A stretch of 64,000 nucleotides of DNA from Guillardia theta CCMP2712 (taxonomy: Eukaryota; Protista; Cryptophyta). The notes under the pieces are model-generated. The model was not told the origin of the DNA and did no database searches. It saw nothing but the letters and a program-made list of their open reading frames with translations. This document shows, piece by piece, positions 1,680 through 8,500 of this stretch. The position numbers and the translations under genes were made by a program. Numbering within the stretch: position 1 is the stretch's first letter; each line of letters opens with the position of its first letter. Location: positions 419,925-483,924 of the forward strand of contig NW_005434645.1 of assembly GCF_000315625.1 (NCBI RefSeq), read 5' to 3'.

Positions 1680-2368
1680 GTTCCATTTCGTCGGCACTAC
1701 TATCGGAGGTACCGTGGATTATCCCTGTACCCTCCTCAATATTATGAAATGTAGGGGTACTCTCCGGTCCATTGGGGGTCTTTTCCGACTACTAGCTACA
1801 GAGAAGCTACAAAGGGGTCGAGGTAGGTCCATGGTCCCCCCGGGGCCGGCCGCCGCCGGGGCCCCCGGCGGCCGGGCCCGGCTGGCGGAGTCAGTCCGAC
1901 CACGTGACTACTAACAGACAGATCGGGGGGCACTGCAGCGGCCGCGCCCGGGACTGCCAGGGGACTCAGGCCGCTCGAGTCGGCCGCCTACTAGCGGTTT
2001 GATTGAACAGTGGTCACTGTCATGCCGGACGCCGCCGGCCGGGCGTCCGACTCCGGCGATCCGACATCGCCGACCCGGACCCGGGCCACTGGCAAACATC
2101 TCATGATCCAATGCCTTAGCGCCGCCACTGGCACGGTCCAATCATTATCGGAGTCTTTCTAGTGATGTCAAGGAAGAACTGGAGGTTCAAATATCAGGCC
2201 GCTGCGGTGGCCCGGGGGCACTTGAAGTCACTGTGGCATATTCAGTTCAACTGACTTGGCAAGTTGAATGAACTGAGTCACAAAGTTTGCATATGAGACG
2301 GGCGGCGCCCCGCCGGACTCCCTGCCGGGCCCGGACTAGGAGGGGTTTAGGTTTAGGAATCCACTTAA

Positions 2369-2519
2369 TAGATAAACGCCACGAATCTATCTACCACGGG
2401 TACTCTCCTCATGATGTGACGGAATATGTGAATACCCTTCTGAACGACGAACTAAGTTTTCGCACAGAACTGCCGTCGTATGATTGAGAGCCGCGACTCT
2501 CCGTCATACAACGGCAGTT
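2369..2519 (-). ncRNA. Candidate Fanzor omegaRNA scaffold (four abutting hairpins)
   Basis: Stems at 2468-2483/2504-2519 (inner 2486-2501), 2438-2442/2465-2469, 2398-2404/2431-2437 and 2369-2376/2386-2393. Four plus-strand C-A mismatches become G-U pairs on the minus strand. Lies ~215 nt downstream of the Fanzor stop. Exact ends are unknown. Confidence 0.7.
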
Positions 2520-2733
2520 GTTTTTTTTTGCCAAATTGTCTTCGGATGTTGTTGGAGCCTTACATGAATCCTACCAAATGATGCCAGTCAGTCACTTCAA
2601 TGATCACATGTCGTAAACATCGGATCATAATGGAGGCAGGCACCGGGCAGGCAGGCAGGCAGGGAATTAGGCATCGAGTCCCGAGGGACGCAGTCTGGGT
2701 AGGGAGGGGGCGACAACAATCATTGAATTCACC

Positions 2734-4795
2734 TCAGGGGCGACGTAGGTGATTCGGTCTTTCAGGAAACACATTGAAACAAGTGAGTATATTCAGTGCA
2801 GCATTCAAGTCCCTGGATTTGATCGGCTTTCCTTTACAGCTGTCACGATAACAGTTAGATGAAAAGGTGAATTACAGGAGTATACAAAACTTGACATTAC
2901 CTCGATGATCTGCAAAATTTCAATCCTCGTACTTCACTTTTCCTTGTTTTCAACCTACAGGTCTCGTCTGGTTCTTTCCCTGTATTTTCAATCCGTCGAA
3001 GCACATCGAGCTCAGAACCACAATCGTTACAGCACTTGGTAGTACGGTATTCGTCAACATCTACGACTCTGTAGTGATTCTCGAATCTTCTTCTTATCCA
3101 CCTGACCGGTACAGGCCTTTCTCCTCGACGTCCTATAGACGGGAACCTTGCATTTCCGTATGCGATAACAGGTTCTATTTCTCCCTTTCCTTTCATTGTA
3201 CGGATAAACCTGTCGACTGACTTTCGTTTCGAAATGTAGATGTCGAATTTCATCCTGGCGTATTTTCGCTTTGAATAATGCGAAGTTAACTCCTCCCAAT
3301 GACTTGTAACTGCAAGAAGATAGTCTTCGAATCTTGATAGACTGCCGCCAGACTTACTCGAGAACCCCTTGAGATAGTGCAATGTCGATTGAATATCTTG
3401 ATCCCACGTCTTTCTTTTCTTTTTATTGCGATTCAGATGTGACTCGTGATAATATTGTTTTCTCGAAAACTGAAATCTTTTTCTGATTATTTGTTGATCA
3501 TCTCTGAATTGTTCGACGGCCGATATAATGACGCTCCTCCCAGGGTCGATCGCAATTACCCTTGGGCAATTTTTACATTCTTCGATCTCTCTTTGGTATT
3601 CTGAATTTTCATGTAATACTTTGTATGATATTGATATCTTCTTCGCCGATTTCCGTTCAGCCCTTTTTCTATCGGCAAGCCATTTGGTAGTGCGCAATGA
3701 AGGTTCCTGTTCGAGTCCATCGATTGTTTTGACAATCAGCGTGAATCGAAAACAAACCGATACACCGTCTGTCGTGATACTTGTAATCTCCTCTCTCTGA
3801 TCTCTGAACAGATTCGAACAGTCGAAAATCCTTCTGAAATTCCTAGAGTTCTCCAAAGTTTGATCTATTCTCATGAACGATTTTTTATCTTCTCCCGGTT
3901 TCAAACTGTTCGCTTCTTTCAAAATGTAATACATCACATCATTATCGATTGTTAGATGTTTTCTGCCGAATTTCGACATTGGTGCTGCCTTGAATGTTTT
4001 TTTCGAGAGACCACGATCTTCGAAGAACTTCAACATGAACATGTGTGTCTCGATTATCTCAAACAGATTTTTCTGCAACCTATGATCAAATTTGTCATAT
4101 TTGAAACTAAAAAGATCTTCGTCCCCCGATAATCCAATTAGTTGTTTCATATGGTCGATGAAGGTTCCTATCTGCTGTGAATTATTCCTGTTAAACACTT
4201 CTGTCTTCAACTCGTAATCTTTCCTTTGAAACAATACATTCTTCACGTCTTCGATTTCTTGCTGATGGTTAATATGTAACTCTCCTTTGCAGAATTCGGC
4301 AATGAACTTTTCCAATCGGTTTGTAAAATTTGCTTTCAGGTCTTGGTAGAAATTCGTTCCATATTGATTTGCAGCGAATACAATAGCTTGCGAGTCTCCT
4401 CGAATTCTACATAAATCAACGAAAAGATGTCTTTTCTCTGACCAGAAACGTTGTAGAGTTGGATACTTGTTATCTGTACGGCTATGTTGTTCCATTCCAA
4501 GTGTAAAAACATTCCAGAAAAATGTCGATTTGGCTCTCTTGATTTCATCTACTACATATCGTAAATTCCCTGTATCCCTGCCCCATATCAGAAAACAGTT
4601 GAATATCATACTGCCTCTTGATGTGACGTGACTGATATGTAATACCCATCTGTCGATCACGTCTAAAATCGATCTGTTCTCTACCTTGAGTCTCGAGTAT
4701 AACCCACATTTGACGACTCTCGTGAATGGTTTTGAATAACTTATTTCTTGACCGTTGTCTGAATCATCTGTAATTCGTTTTCTCTTCCTCGGCAT
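2734..4795 (-). CDS. Fanzor1-like (TnpB-family) RNA-guided DNA endonuclease, 2 exons (4795-2901, 2839-2734), 666 aa
   Basis: ITTDGVSVC motif, RuvC-I VIAIDPG, IAYGNARF, RuvC-II VDEYRTTKCCNDC. After removing the GT-AG intron 2900-2840: CRSSSC and RuvC-III SRDLNAALNI...RPNHLRRP*. N-terminal NLS-like PRKRKR. Confidence 0.92.
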
Positions 4796-5597
4796 GTTAT
4801 AGTATGTTAGTCTGGCGAAACCATGTTAGATAGCAGGTAGTCGCTACATTTTTTTCATTACCATCGTTTCAGTGTATTGTCGGACCGCAAACTCTGTAAT
4901 GGCGGGAAGACGAAACGAGAGCCACAAACTTTCCGTCGGAGGCGGGAAGAATTTTTTTTTTCTTTTTTAAGACCCTCATACAGCCCCATTGGATGGGTGA
5001 TTGAAACCTATCAACGACCCCTGTCATGCTGGTCCAGGACTCCTTCGGGAGTCCTTTTGTCGATTAAAGGATAAGTTTCTCCGGCCCGGGACAAGTTCCC
5101 GCCACTTTTCCAGGGTACGGGTGGGACTTTTTCATAGGGAAGGGGGGGTGAGGCTATTCAATTGTGAGGGTGGGCAATCTCCAATGACGAAGGGGTGGGG
5201 TACTTTGCAGTCAGATTGTAGGGTGCTCTTCCGGGCCTTCCAAAAGGCGGGAAAAAGTTTGCCGCGCTCCAATGTCCTGCCGCTTACCTATGCCGTTCCT
5301 TGACCAAACTTCCTTCCCATGGAAGAGTATCTTCAACTTATCTCTGATTATATCTGCGACTTTGTTCTGCTCCTTCGATCTCTTGTGGTTGTTTCTCCCT
5401 CGTAATGTCCTTAAGCTTCCTCTTGGTGCAAATTCTTGCAAATTTCCGAACTTTCTTCGTTGTGTTTCATCAACCTGATTCTGTATTGACAGATAGATTA
5501 ATTGCGCCGGAATCAAACTTGAATTATTCGTCAACCAATTTCAGTTTCTCGTGCTTGAAAAGTCCAACAAAGTTGGTCACATTGTGAAATATTTGCA

Positions 5598-8500
5598 ATG
5601 AGCAAATCTGCATCAAGATCTGTTCATTCCAAAGAAGCAGCGCTTCAACCTGATTTTCTGGATCGCCAGCTGGGAAACAGTGAACTAATAAAGAGATTAA
5701 AGGTTCTTGTGATTCACAAAGTGTTAGAAATAGAGTGTTTAATGTTTCTTCAAGGTTGCCACTGAAGTATTGGAAGCGTACGGAGATGAAGATGAAATCG
5801 TTGAGCAGGCTAAAAGAGGTTGTATCTCGTTTGTCTCCTTGTTGCCATCTGATGAAATCTGCAGAAATTGGGCAGCTCTCATCTTCCCTTGGCGAGGATT
5901 GGCTTGTAGAACATAAGAATAAGGACGTGCGGCTGTTGGTTGCTTGTGCATTGGCTGATGTGCTTCGAATCTACGCACCTGACCCTCCATATGAGGAGCA
6001 AATTTGTGCCGACATCATGAAGCTTTTTATCAAAATTTTGAGAGATTTTGAGAACCCAGACATGAATACACAGCATCCCTCGTACAGGTAATCAATGTTT
6101 TGATCGAAGAACTCCCCTTGGTTGACTCAATTGCATTCTAGTATCCATTTCTACCTTTTGGAACGACTGAGCACGATCTCAATATTCAGTATAATTCCCG
6201 AGCTCATTGGATTCCGTGATGAGTTGATGTTAGAGCTCACAAAAGCAGCATACACTTTAGTTGGAAACATGCCCAACCATAGTTCAGCATCCAAAGTGAC
6301 AGAGCACCTTACAAGTATCCTATGCAGTGTCATTGAAGAAACCGAGTATCATGAAATTCAGCTGCTGGATCTTGTTGTGGGAGCGCTCTGTCAACATGAG
6401 AAAAAAGAAAATCCCAATGGTTATAGTATGATGAAGACGGTCATCGCCTCCTGTGAAAACCACTTTCAATACTTTTTGGAGCGACAGCTTCACCAGGTAA
6501 TTGTATACATATTCTGACTATGGAGAGATGATTGTTTCCCCTCTAGATCAAAGCAGGATTTCAAACTGAAAGTGAACTGGCTAATGGTGAACGGCTGGCA
6601 GAGGCTGTTTACGAATTGAGCACTGTTGCTCCTCGCGTTCTGACTCAGGTACAGCATTTCAGTGTTATATTCTCTGACTCAAACTCGAAGGTTCTGCCTG
6701 CATACACTGAAGACCTGACCATGGAAGATCCAAGTCTTAGAATCAAGGCGGTAAAATTGCTTGGAGCTATTTTTTCAGTCGGGACCTTCCAATTGGATTT
6801 TTCACAAGTGTTCACCGAATTCAAGAGGAGAACCTTTGACAAAGACCCCGACGTGCGCAAGTCGATGGCTTCAGTCATTCACCACCTCGTTTCTAAGAGA
6901 CCAGAACTTTCCAAGGCATTCATGGAGGAAAGTTGGGTTGCCAATGGCGACGAAAGAGATGCACCCATGCGCCTCCTAGTCATCGATTCCGACGAAGGAG
7001 TTCGCTGTGAGTCTGTGAGTGCCGTCTTCGACCTTTCTCTGAGTAATCCAGAAACTATCCCTACGGAGTTTCTGAAGTATGTTTCTGAACGAGTGATGGA
7101 TAAGAAAGCAAGTGTGAGGAAGAAAGCATTGGAGGGCCTAGCCAATTTGTGGCAAAAATATTGTGCTCCATACAAATATTTTGATTTAACGAATGCTTCA
7201 GAGCAGCGCTATGCTTGGATTCCTTCTAAGATTCTTTCGATTTCAACTTTAGACCAGGAGTCACGAGTTCATGCTTTGCACTGTCTTGAAAATATTTGCT
7301 TGAATGAGGAAAACATTGGACGGCCTTCTCATGACCTGGCATTGGACTTCTTCTGCTTGTTGGACCATAAGGGAAAGGATCAAATGTTCAATCTTTTGCG
7401 ATCGAAGCATCTTTTCTTGGAGAATTTTTTGAAGTTCAGTCAATTGCAAACAAAATCCTCGATGGAGATTGACGAAGATGAAAACGACAAGACCGAGGAA
7501 AGCTTGATTTCCAAGATTTCCTCCAGTTTTGCCGATCCTTCTGCAGCCAGTGAAGCCATCATGAAATTACGAGACATCAAAACTGGTAAAATTTGGGAGA
7601 ACTTGGAGGTAATGGCCAAACAATCAAAAACTGCTGAGGAGTTCAAAAAGTTGCATGACGATGTGATGAAAAAACTGGGACCCAGAAATCCAGTTTCAGG
7701 TTTTATGAAGACTTTGTTGTCAAAGTTAATTGACAATCACTTTGGAATTACCTTTATCCAGAATGTCCTCAAGTGTTTGCAGCATGATGACTCCGACATG
7801 GTATTAAGAGCGAAGAAGGGCCTTCCCGTACTTGCAGTACAGGCCAAAATTTTTGCCACCATGTTTAGCAACGAAGAGGCTATTCTGGAATCTCTTTTGA
7901 TGAAATCACCAACTGAGGATCCAGAAATCCTGGAATACCTACTGAAGATCACAAGTGAGACTGGCAAAGATCTACATCGTCTTCGAAAAAACAAGTCCTT
8001 TCTTTCCAAGCTTGAAAATTACTGTTCACATGATTCATGGATGGTGGCCAAATATGCGATTCGGAGTCTCCTGTCATTGAAAGAAAGCTTTTCTGCAGAT
8101 GGGAAGAAGTTCGTTGACAACTGTGTCAAGGCTTTGAATTTTGGACCTGGGCTTCCGTCCACTCTCAGAGTCCTTGTCGAAGTCCTGAAGGTGCATCCAG
8201 AGCTTTCTCCTAGCATCGAGACGACTATTGAGAAGTTCGTTGTCAAGAAGCTTCTCCATGCACCTTCAAATCATTCTTCAAGCAAAAAGGATCGTAATAT
8301 CCACATGCAGGCCAGGGTCCAGGGGATCAAGCTGATTTCTATTTACCTTTCCCATGGCGACTTGGAGACAGAAGTGGCTGAGACACTACTTGATCATATA
8401 CAAAATATCATTCAAGAACAAGGAGAAGTGTCTACAGATCGAAGCACTGCAAAGCCAGACAGGGCCACCTTGAGGCTTGTTGCTGGATCTTGCTTAATCA

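Follow-up and report, generated by a model that had tools for sequence, protein, structure and literature searches.

An intact copy of a probable Fanzor1-only transposon, with a candidate omegaRNA at its right end, in the cryptophyte Guillardia theta

The locus described here raises the question whether a Fanzor1-like gene of the cryptophyte alga Guillardia theta CCMP2712 is the known nuclease of this organism or a paralogue, and to what kind of genetic unit it belongs. The gene lies in a stretch of 64,000 nucleotides (nt) of NCBI RefSeq assembly GCF_000315625.1 (contig NW_005434645.1, positions 419,925 to 483,924 of the forward strand), which is referred to as the window and whose positions are counted from its first letter. 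Fanzor1 is an established and very large family, and a G. theta Fanzor, GtFz1, has been characterised biochemically and structurally (PMC10432273, PMC11423790). An earlier annotation, made from the letters and their open reading frames (ORFs) and referred to as the sequence-only reading, had called a Fanzor1-like nuclease with a downstream omegaRNA candidate and had left open whether the protein was GtFz1. The analysis reported here indicates that positions 2365-5074 (minus strand) are probably an intact copy of a Fanzor1-only transposon that was active recently. The element would encode the nuclease and, at its right end, its omegaRNA; the RNA and its targeting are proposed by analogy. Contigs of the G. 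theta genome (G000) are given as C numbers, the window lying on C29, and RNA sequencing runs as X numbers. The features are collected in Table 1.

The Fanzor1 gene and its product

The minus-strand ORF at 2897-4795 (632 amino acids) runs to a GT donor, and the splice 2901/2839 takes out a GT..AG intron on the same strand. The joined exons yield the protein of exactly 666 amino acids that had been proposed, with the stop codon TGA at 2736-2734, and the joint is found in RNA contigs of two independent runs, X2 and X4, which come from different studies. Read depth is zero on the window copy's own flanks (2200-2300 and 5129-5200), which identifies the runs as transcriptomes and not genomic DNA. 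In the stranded run X16, the first mates of reads over 3008-4320 all fall on the plus strand, which would represent minus-strand sense RNA if the library follows the usual dUTP design. Sense reads in X16 are few, 96 in about 6% of the run. An optional second intron, in the 3' untranslated region (UTR), is indicated weakly; its splicing would place the stop codon beside the structured block described below.

RNA contigs also contain GT..AG joints of the plus strand, at 2783-2839, 3170-3237 and 3306-3543, and these point to an antisense spliced transcript that crosses the Fanzor1 gene. The joint at 2783-2839 has a strong consensus (AAG/GTGAGT...TTTCCTTTACAG/C), occurs in three runs, and its contigs keep the sense intron; the longest ORF of the antisense spliced RNA has 87 amino acids.

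The RuvC residues and zinc ligands of the sequence-only reading could all be placed. RuvC-I (VIAIDPGR) supplies D417 (codon 3547-3545), RuvC-II (VDEYRTT) supplies E582 (codon 3052-3050), and RuvC-III (SRDLNAA), in exon 2, supplies D642 (codon 2811-2809), which gives an intact D-E-D triad. Four cysteines (C589-x2-C592 and C628-x4-C633) form a zinc-ribbon/TNB insert between RuvC-II and RuvC-III, and the N-terminus, MPRKRKR, is basic and resembles a nuclear localisation signal. A spliceosomal intron or such a signal is the eukaryotic adaptation expected of a Fanzor1 protein. Among 60 aligned homologues, D417 and E582 are invariant, and the R-D-x-N-A columns of exon 2 are conserved at 90% or more.

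The match to Pfam PF07282 (Cas12f1-like TNB) is weak (E-value 0.033) and falls under the cut-off. A phmmer search of PDB sequences returned the Fanzor1 of Spizellomyces punctatus, SpuFz1 (8gkh), as the sole match (E-value 1.6e-6, residues 375-604), the IDP and DEY motifs of SpuFz1 aligning with the D417 and E582 motifs of the window protein. A word-indexed protein search gave three matches only, and an exhaustive profile search was used instead: a five-sequence family profile retrieved 5744 cluster representatives among 1.84 billion proteins, 685 of them at an E-value of 1e-30 or below. Named relatives are a transcript of the cryptophyte Hanusia phi and the Marseillevirus LCMAC101 protein QBK85705. 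The nearest non-cryptophyte relatives are 33-35% identical, and their contig neighbours comprise YqaJ, histone-like, PARP and dsrm genes, which we take as a sign of giant viruses. In the ESM Atlas, the window protein falls among DUF8286 clusters from Nucleocytoviricota and Mucoromycota.

The fold was modelled from the 632-residue exon-1 product, and the RuvC-III helix is therefore absent from the model. With the 60-sequence alignment, AlphaFold2 reached a predicted local distance difference test score (pLDDT) of 84.1 and a predicted template modelling score (pTM) of 0.84. Foldseek against the PDB gave SpuFz1 (E-value 2.9e-19, template modelling (TM) score 0.62), PpFz1 (5.1e-17, TM 0.60) and GtFz1 (2.1e-15, TM 0.50), in alignments that span about 630 or more columns, zinc-ribbon part included. 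The top seven fold matches are Fz1 structures, and Cas12f and TnpB follow far behind (TM about 0.2 or less), in agreement with a bilobed Fz1 architecture, with its enlarged WED/REC lobe, along the whole length. Sequence search, profile search and structure prediction with Foldseek thus agree with the original Fanzor1-like call, and the assignment of the protein as a Fanzor1-type RuvC nuclease is supported in every family feature that can be tested computationally. All catalytic residues and zinc ligands are present; that the protein would be a catalytically competent, programmable nuclease, as the sequence-only reading proposed, is a prediction.

The window protein is not GtFz1. The published start of the GtFz1 omegaRNA maps without mismatch to C7:896451, the coordinate published for NW_005434667, and a genome search finds it on C7 and C345 only. 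The ORF on C7 (690 amino acids, MSNIRIVKRK...) matches PDB entries 9CER, 9CES and 9CET over residues 2-690 (1611.6 bits, E-value 0), and 9CER is absent from the phmmer search of PDB sequences with the window protein. BLASTP aligns GtFz1 and the window protein over 51 residues around RuvC-II, at 35% identity, and this short alignment, together with the different locus, length, triad and omegaRNA sequence, led to rejection of identity. The family profile aligns GtFz1 over residues 22-669 (70.8 bits), and so the two proteins share homology along their whole length, although they fall into Fz1 clades that are far apart. The question left by the sequence-only reading is settled on the side of a deeply divergent, uncharacterised paralogue. 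In the literature covered, the GtFz1 family alone is described for G. theta, and the G. theta loci file of Saito 2023 likewise lists no other family.

Ends, copies and variation of the mobile element

The ends of the element were defined by blastn and flank alignment of its genomic copies, which form family 1. The right end is kept in 14 copies and the left end in at least 11 (375-nt right and 279-nt left probes). Six copies have TTAA and three have TTAT as the outer tetranucleotide on both sides, and the fourth flank base co-varies between the two sides in nine of ten complete copies, which indicates a 4-bp TTAW target-site duplication. The element contains no other gene and no long terminal inverted repeat; its first and last 15 bases, compared as an inverted repeat, match at 7 of 15 positions (degenerate). 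For comparison with the ends of DDE transposons, the end sequence of the Fanzor element is T(G/A)GNTAANNGACACA.

The interval 2340-4795 of the sequence-only reading holds the gene and the non-coding block; it misses the 5' 279 nt of the element (4796-5074) and includes 2340-2364, which lie outside the element. This outer stretch of 25-26 nt is therefore a candidate guide and not scaffold.

Table 1. Features of the Fanzor1 element in the window and copies of a second Fanzor1 family in the G. theta genome
Feature	Position	Strand	Remarks
Element core	2369..5070	minus	2702 bp, gene sense CCTTTAATCG...GGCGTTTATCTA; homology to at least 10 other copies stops here
Left 4-bp flank, duplication position	5071..5074	minus	TTAT in gene sense
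Right 4-bp flank, duplication position	2365..2368	minus	TTAA in gene sense; predicted last scaffold bases
Subterminal left-end hairpin	5037..5054	minus	GGACTCC-CGAA-GGAGTCC, read from the sequence
5' non-coding part (presumed promoter and 5' UTR)	4796..5070	minus	most variable part; in at least 11 copies
Exon 1	2901..4795	minus	codons 1-631 and 2 nt; PRKRKR, D417, E582, Cys589/592/628
Intron	2840..2900	minus	61 nt, GT..AG; joint in runs X2 and X4
Exon 2	2734..2839	minus	Cys633, SRDLNAA (D642), TGA; 0 variable sites among 11 copies
Optional 3' UTR intron	2571..2732	minus	162 nt, GT..AG; single X2 contig, depth 3.5; weak
Candidate omegaRNA scaffold	2366..2535	minus	fold, strand bias, low variability, RNA contigs; 5' limit approximate
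Predicted native guide	2340..2364	minus	flank past right duplication, GTGGATTCCTAAACC...; from OMEGA/Fanzor anatomy
Family-2 copies	G000: C14, C26 (two), C78, C6, C62, C64, C1, C30		
Family-2 fragments	G000: C82, C3, C7, C1		

Family-1 copies are 97-99% identical, which indicates recent amplification. The coding sequence (CDS) is intact in four copies (the window copy and those on C23, C111 and C87), and in seven of the 11 copies aligned it is disrupted by deletions or private insertions of 2-6 nt. These insertions are rich in G+C (CTGC, GCCG, CACG, CCAT, GCCA, TG, CG, ACCGTG) and occur in the copies on C40, C30, C57, C244 and C87, at positions equivalent to 2947, 3108, 4708, 3718, 2608, 4024, 4252, 2587 and 2418 of the window. 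They show no duplication of adjacent bases, resemble end-joining filler, and are commoner than small deletions.

The right flank of the window copy (2299-2365) is 100% identical over 67 nt to that of the copy on C30 (C30:320082-320148) and absent elsewhere from the genome. These are also the two copies with mismatched flanks (TTAT/TTAA in the window copy, AGTT/TTAA in the C30 copy). A dispersed repeat was rejected as an explanation of the shared flank since there are two occurrences only in the genome, and transposition with an alternative end was rejected since there is no matching duplication. One solitary right end of family 1 (30 nt, 100% identical, C36:78962-78991) has no gene remnant adjoining it. 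Guide-RNA-only 'ghost' loci, as in S. punctatus, were not found in the genome; apart from this solo end, right ends adjoin Fanzor remnants.

The candidate omegaRNA and known Fanzor1 systems

The stop codon (2734) is separated from the right duplication by 365 nt. The 170 nt that adjoin the right end (2535-2366, minus strand) have a folding energy of -64.8 kcal/mol (z-score -6.8), which none of 200 shuffled sequences reaches; the structured non-coding block that had been noticed downstream of the gene, on the same strand, is thus borne out. The complementary strand of 2366-2535 folds at -50.5 kcal/mol (z-score -4.3). Four consecutive hairpins are predicted, at about 2518-2469, 2468-2439, 2437-2398 and 2396-2366. 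In the terminal hairpin (12 bp, several G-U pairs), which holds the right inverted-repeat remnant, GGUAGAUAGAU pairs with the right terminal repeat and with the duplication's TTA; in the TTAT copies this hairpin gains a 13th pair. RNA contigs (from long RNA, unstranded) cover 2365-2772, and one X2 contig crosses the right end by read-through and continues for 194 nt in flanking DNA of the C40 copy.

Among 11 copies, the 3' region (368 nt) has 2 variable sites, exon 1 (1895 nt) has 49 and the 5' region (279 nt) has 20, i.e. 0.54, 2.6 and 7.2 per 100 nt. In Fisher tests the 3' region differs from exon 1 with p 0.012 (0.052 without a misaligned stretch) and from the 5' region with p 3e-6. Structured, strand-biased, conserved, transcribed, and placed exactly at the right end, the block is a candidate for the omegaRNA scaffold of the element, and a likely one by analogy with characterised systems. 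In Rfam, the sole match was a miRNA-precursor-like one to the long hairpin, below threshold (22.9 bits, gathering score 100), and it was rejected as chance. The first 20 bases of the predicted guide, from 2364 downward (GTGGATTCCTAAACCTAAAC), occur in the genome only here and beside the C30 copy.

Guide RNAs of Fanzor1 proteins, as mapped by small-RNA sequencing, carry the terminal inverted repeat (TIR) and the target-site duplication (TSD) inside the scaffold and extend about 15 nt past the TSD (Yoon 2023, PMC10711439). On the model of SpuFz1, of GtFz1 and of the Fanzor1 proteins of insect viruses, a transcript over the 3' region and the right end would be processed to the omegaRNA. Its scaffold would be about the last 170 nt, with four hairpins, the last of which would consist of the right terminal repeat and the TTA(W) duplication and would end at 2365; the guide would be the 15-25 nt of flanking DNA past the duplication. 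The ribonucleoprotein would cut double-stranded DNA that carries this flank beside a target-adjacent motif (TAM), predicted as TTAW because TTAW precedes the flank in the empty site; the target would be the empty insertion site, and its cleavage would help the element to be retained or copied anew. For the element to reach new TTAW sites, a transposase acting in trans would be required.

GtFz1 (XP_005840014) resembles the window protein in being encoded in the same genome (scaffold 7) and in its Fanzor1 fold (TM 0.50). The GtFz1 omegaRNA has about 150 nt and four stem-loops (PMC11423790), and the candidate of the window likewise has four hairpins. The measured TAM of GtFz1, TTAAN (PMC10432273), resembles the TTAW flanks of the window element, and the GtFz1 scaffold takes in the last base of the flank (PMC10432273, PMC11423790), as is predicted for the window element. 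Differences are as follows: GtFz1 has 690 amino acids, is encoded without an intron and has N658 as the third residue of a non-canonical D-E-N triad (PMC11423790), whereas the window protein has 666 amino acids, one intron and D642; the omegaRNA sequences are unrelated; and the GtFz1 family has two to three diverged copies (84% identity), in contrast to about 14 copies at 97-99% in the window family. The GtFz1 copies at C7:893313-896588 and on C345 are 84% identical over 3.3 kb; they start with TTAG/TTAA+AGTTG and end with ...CACTCTAA (...CTCTAA) followed by G/A, and this last base changes together with the left flank. The left junction of these genomic copies resembles the published TAM. The TAMs are given as CATA for SpuFz1 and TTAAN for GtFz1 by Saito et al. 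2023 (PMC10432273), and as CATA and TTAA for GtFz1 and SpuFz1 'respectively' by Xu et al. 2024 (PMC11423790), i.e. in reverse.

The best match in sequence and in fold is SpuFz1 (PDB 8GKH, 9CEU-9CEZ; TM 0.62, 632 columns), which has the canonical D-E-D triad, the zinc-ribbon insert and a length of 600-700 amino acids in common with the window protein. Its guide RNA comes from the right end of an element with many copies (PMC10432273), the place also expected for a guide RNA of the window element. In the structural alignment, the two proteins are 15-16% identical, and the host of SpuFz1 is a chytrid and not a cryptophyte; the SpuFz1 omegaRNA has about 90 nt, two stem-loops and the TAM CATA, against about 170 nt, four hairpins and the TTAW tetranucleotide in the window.

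A similar architecture is known from elements of insect viruses, which carry Fanzor1 only and have 4-bp TTAN duplications and 13-bp TIRs (Bao and Jurka 2013, PMC3627910). Like the window element, SFav-1, HVav-1, PUgv-1 and HAgv-1 (about 2 kb) contain only Fanzor1 and have TTAN, TTAT or TTAA duplications, short terminal repeats and no known transposase. The SfAV guide RNA (reRNA) includes the TIR and the TSD and about 15 nt beyond (Yoon 2023, PMC10711439), and the same is predicted for the window scaffold. The insect-virus elements, compared here by architecture, have clear 13-bp TIRs and hosts among lepidopteran viruses, in contrast to the degenerate 7/15 repeat and algal host of the window element. 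The closest named non-cryptophyte relatives, Fanzor1/DUF8286 proteins of giant viruses (e.g. Marseillevirus LCMAC101 QBK85705), are 30-35% identical over their full length and have the same domain order; they are single virus genes with no intron, and no end motif of the G. theta kind was detected in their vicinity.

Other Fanzor1 families, alternative readings and significance

Besides family 1 and the GtFz1 family, the genome contains two further Fanzor1 families. Family 2 comprises at least nine near-identical copies, as well as fragments, of an intronless gene whose product (642 amino acids, D-E-D triad) is 33% identical to the window protein. Its plan is that of family 1; the flanks are ATAN and the terminal inverted repeat matches at 11 of 15 positions. 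Tandem repeats of about 87 nt lie upstream of the gene. The right end of family 2 lies 160 nt from the stop codon, and 14 of its last 17 right-end bases are identical to family 1; its 3' region (168 nt) is strongly structured (z-score -5.5). Family 3 (639 amino acids, about 30% identical, motif SRDVNA) is represented by C72:356486-358405 and a locus on C201, which are 80% identical; their similarity stops 31 nt past the stop codon, and no right end or guide-RNA region is recognisable.

At least 10 piggyBac-like loci (PF13843) are present in the genome (C1:917360, C21:234111, C181:12107, C135, C17, C13 and others), some with open frames of 670-800 amino acids. Six sampled loci have no mutual DNA similarity and no termini in common with the Fanzor elements. 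Compared with the piggyBac type, the flanks are TTAA/TTAT in family 1 and ATAN in family 2, and the inverted repeats match at 7 of 15 and 11 of 15 positions, against 13 bp expected. An IS200/IS605-like mode of movement (TnpA Y1), with insertion 3' of a fixed tetranucleotide that is not duplicated, was considered on account of the subterminal hairpins at both ends, but was rejected because the co-variation of the flanks shows a duplication.

Just past the left end of the element, a plus-strand gene begins (5598-6091), whose product contains …LVACALADVLRIYAPDPPYEEQ…; it presumably resembles the N-terminus of the cohesin-associated protein PDS5. Reads with the first mate on the minus strand stop at 5115, which is perhaps the transcription start of this gene.

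The reading preferred here, a recently active Fanzor1-only transposon with its omegaRNA at the right end, has several points against it. The flanks of the window copy themselves differ, with TTAT on the left and TTAA on the right. Relative to exon 1, the lower variability of the 3' region is of borderline significance (p 0.01-0.05), and this region carries indels in some copies; the window copy has a 1-nt deletion in hairpin 3, in common with the C23 copy, and the private substitutions Q56H and I57V. Synonymous and nonsynonymous changes among the copies stand at 9:26 (about 9:16 without the misaligned stretch), a count that does not reveal purifying selection, the copies being too young to tell. 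No transposase that shares the ends was found with the 279-nt left and 375-nt right probes or among six piggyBac-like genes. A further difficulty is that the occupied right junction also reads TTAA followed by the flank, so that the TAM has further positions or the element would be open to self-cleavage. The long-RNA contigs fix neither the ends nor the strand of the RNA and, because the antisense spliced RNA crosses the region, some or all of the coverage of the 3' region could be antisense. Covariation support for the structure was unobtainable: only about the last 21 nt can be aligned between families 1 and 2, the diverged copy on C1 has lost one hairpin arm, and family 3 has only 31 nt past the stop codon in common between its copies.

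The last two points would also suit a genuine Fanzor1 gene whose 3' block is a 3' UTR together with a repeat recognised by a transposase, the hairpins serving transposition or the 3' end or stability of the mRNA, and the real omegaRNA lying elsewhere (e.g. overlapping the end of the CDS) or being absent. The coincidence of the terminal hairpin with the inverted-repeat remnant, and the subterminal hairpin at the left end, fit such an arrangement as well. We consider it improbable: the sense strand folds better than its complement by 14 kcal/mol, through G-U pairs, and signals at the DNA level would not favour one strand; the guide RNAs of characterised Fanzor1 and TnpB proteins are all located at this place, with the terminal repeat and the duplication (PMC10711439, PMC10432273); and in family 2 the mere 160 nt from stop codon to right end are strongly structured too. 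There is a small chance that the element is instead a decaying or silenced transposon with an inactive nuclease, its copies relics and the antisense spliced RNA a product of host silencing. The small indels in seven of the 11 aligned copies, substitutions that do not depart from neutrality, antisense splicing in three runs and the low sense depth in the stranded run would all be expected of a relic, but four copies retain the full 666-codon frame with all catalytic residues, copy identity of 97-99% speaks for recent amplification, and correctly spliced sense RNA exists. Little credence is likewise given to an active Fanzor1 that uses its own TTAW duplication as TAM and cuts beside its own right end as well as at empty sites, with footprints of RNA-guided cleavage and subsequent copy-templated or end-joining repair left in the form of the 67-nt flank common to C29 and C30, the mismatched flanks of these two copies, and the private, non-templated insertions of 2-6 nt. 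If true, these oddities would record, in the genome of a free-living eukaryote, homing or gene conversion driven by Fanzor.

Knowledge of the Fanzor1 class as such is unchanged by this locus, which adds a well-annotated member and a prediction of its TAM and scaffold. The protein is a compact candidate editor of 666 amino acids with a definable guide scaffold, and a canonical D-E-D Fanzor1 is thereby found beside the solved D-E-N GtFz1 in one cell. With about 14 near-identical copies, base-exact ends, 4-bp duplications that predict the TAM, a confirmed intron and four intact genes, the family offers clean material in a culturable alga, and it bears on what moves Fanzor1-only elements and on whether the nuclease aids their persistence in native hosts.

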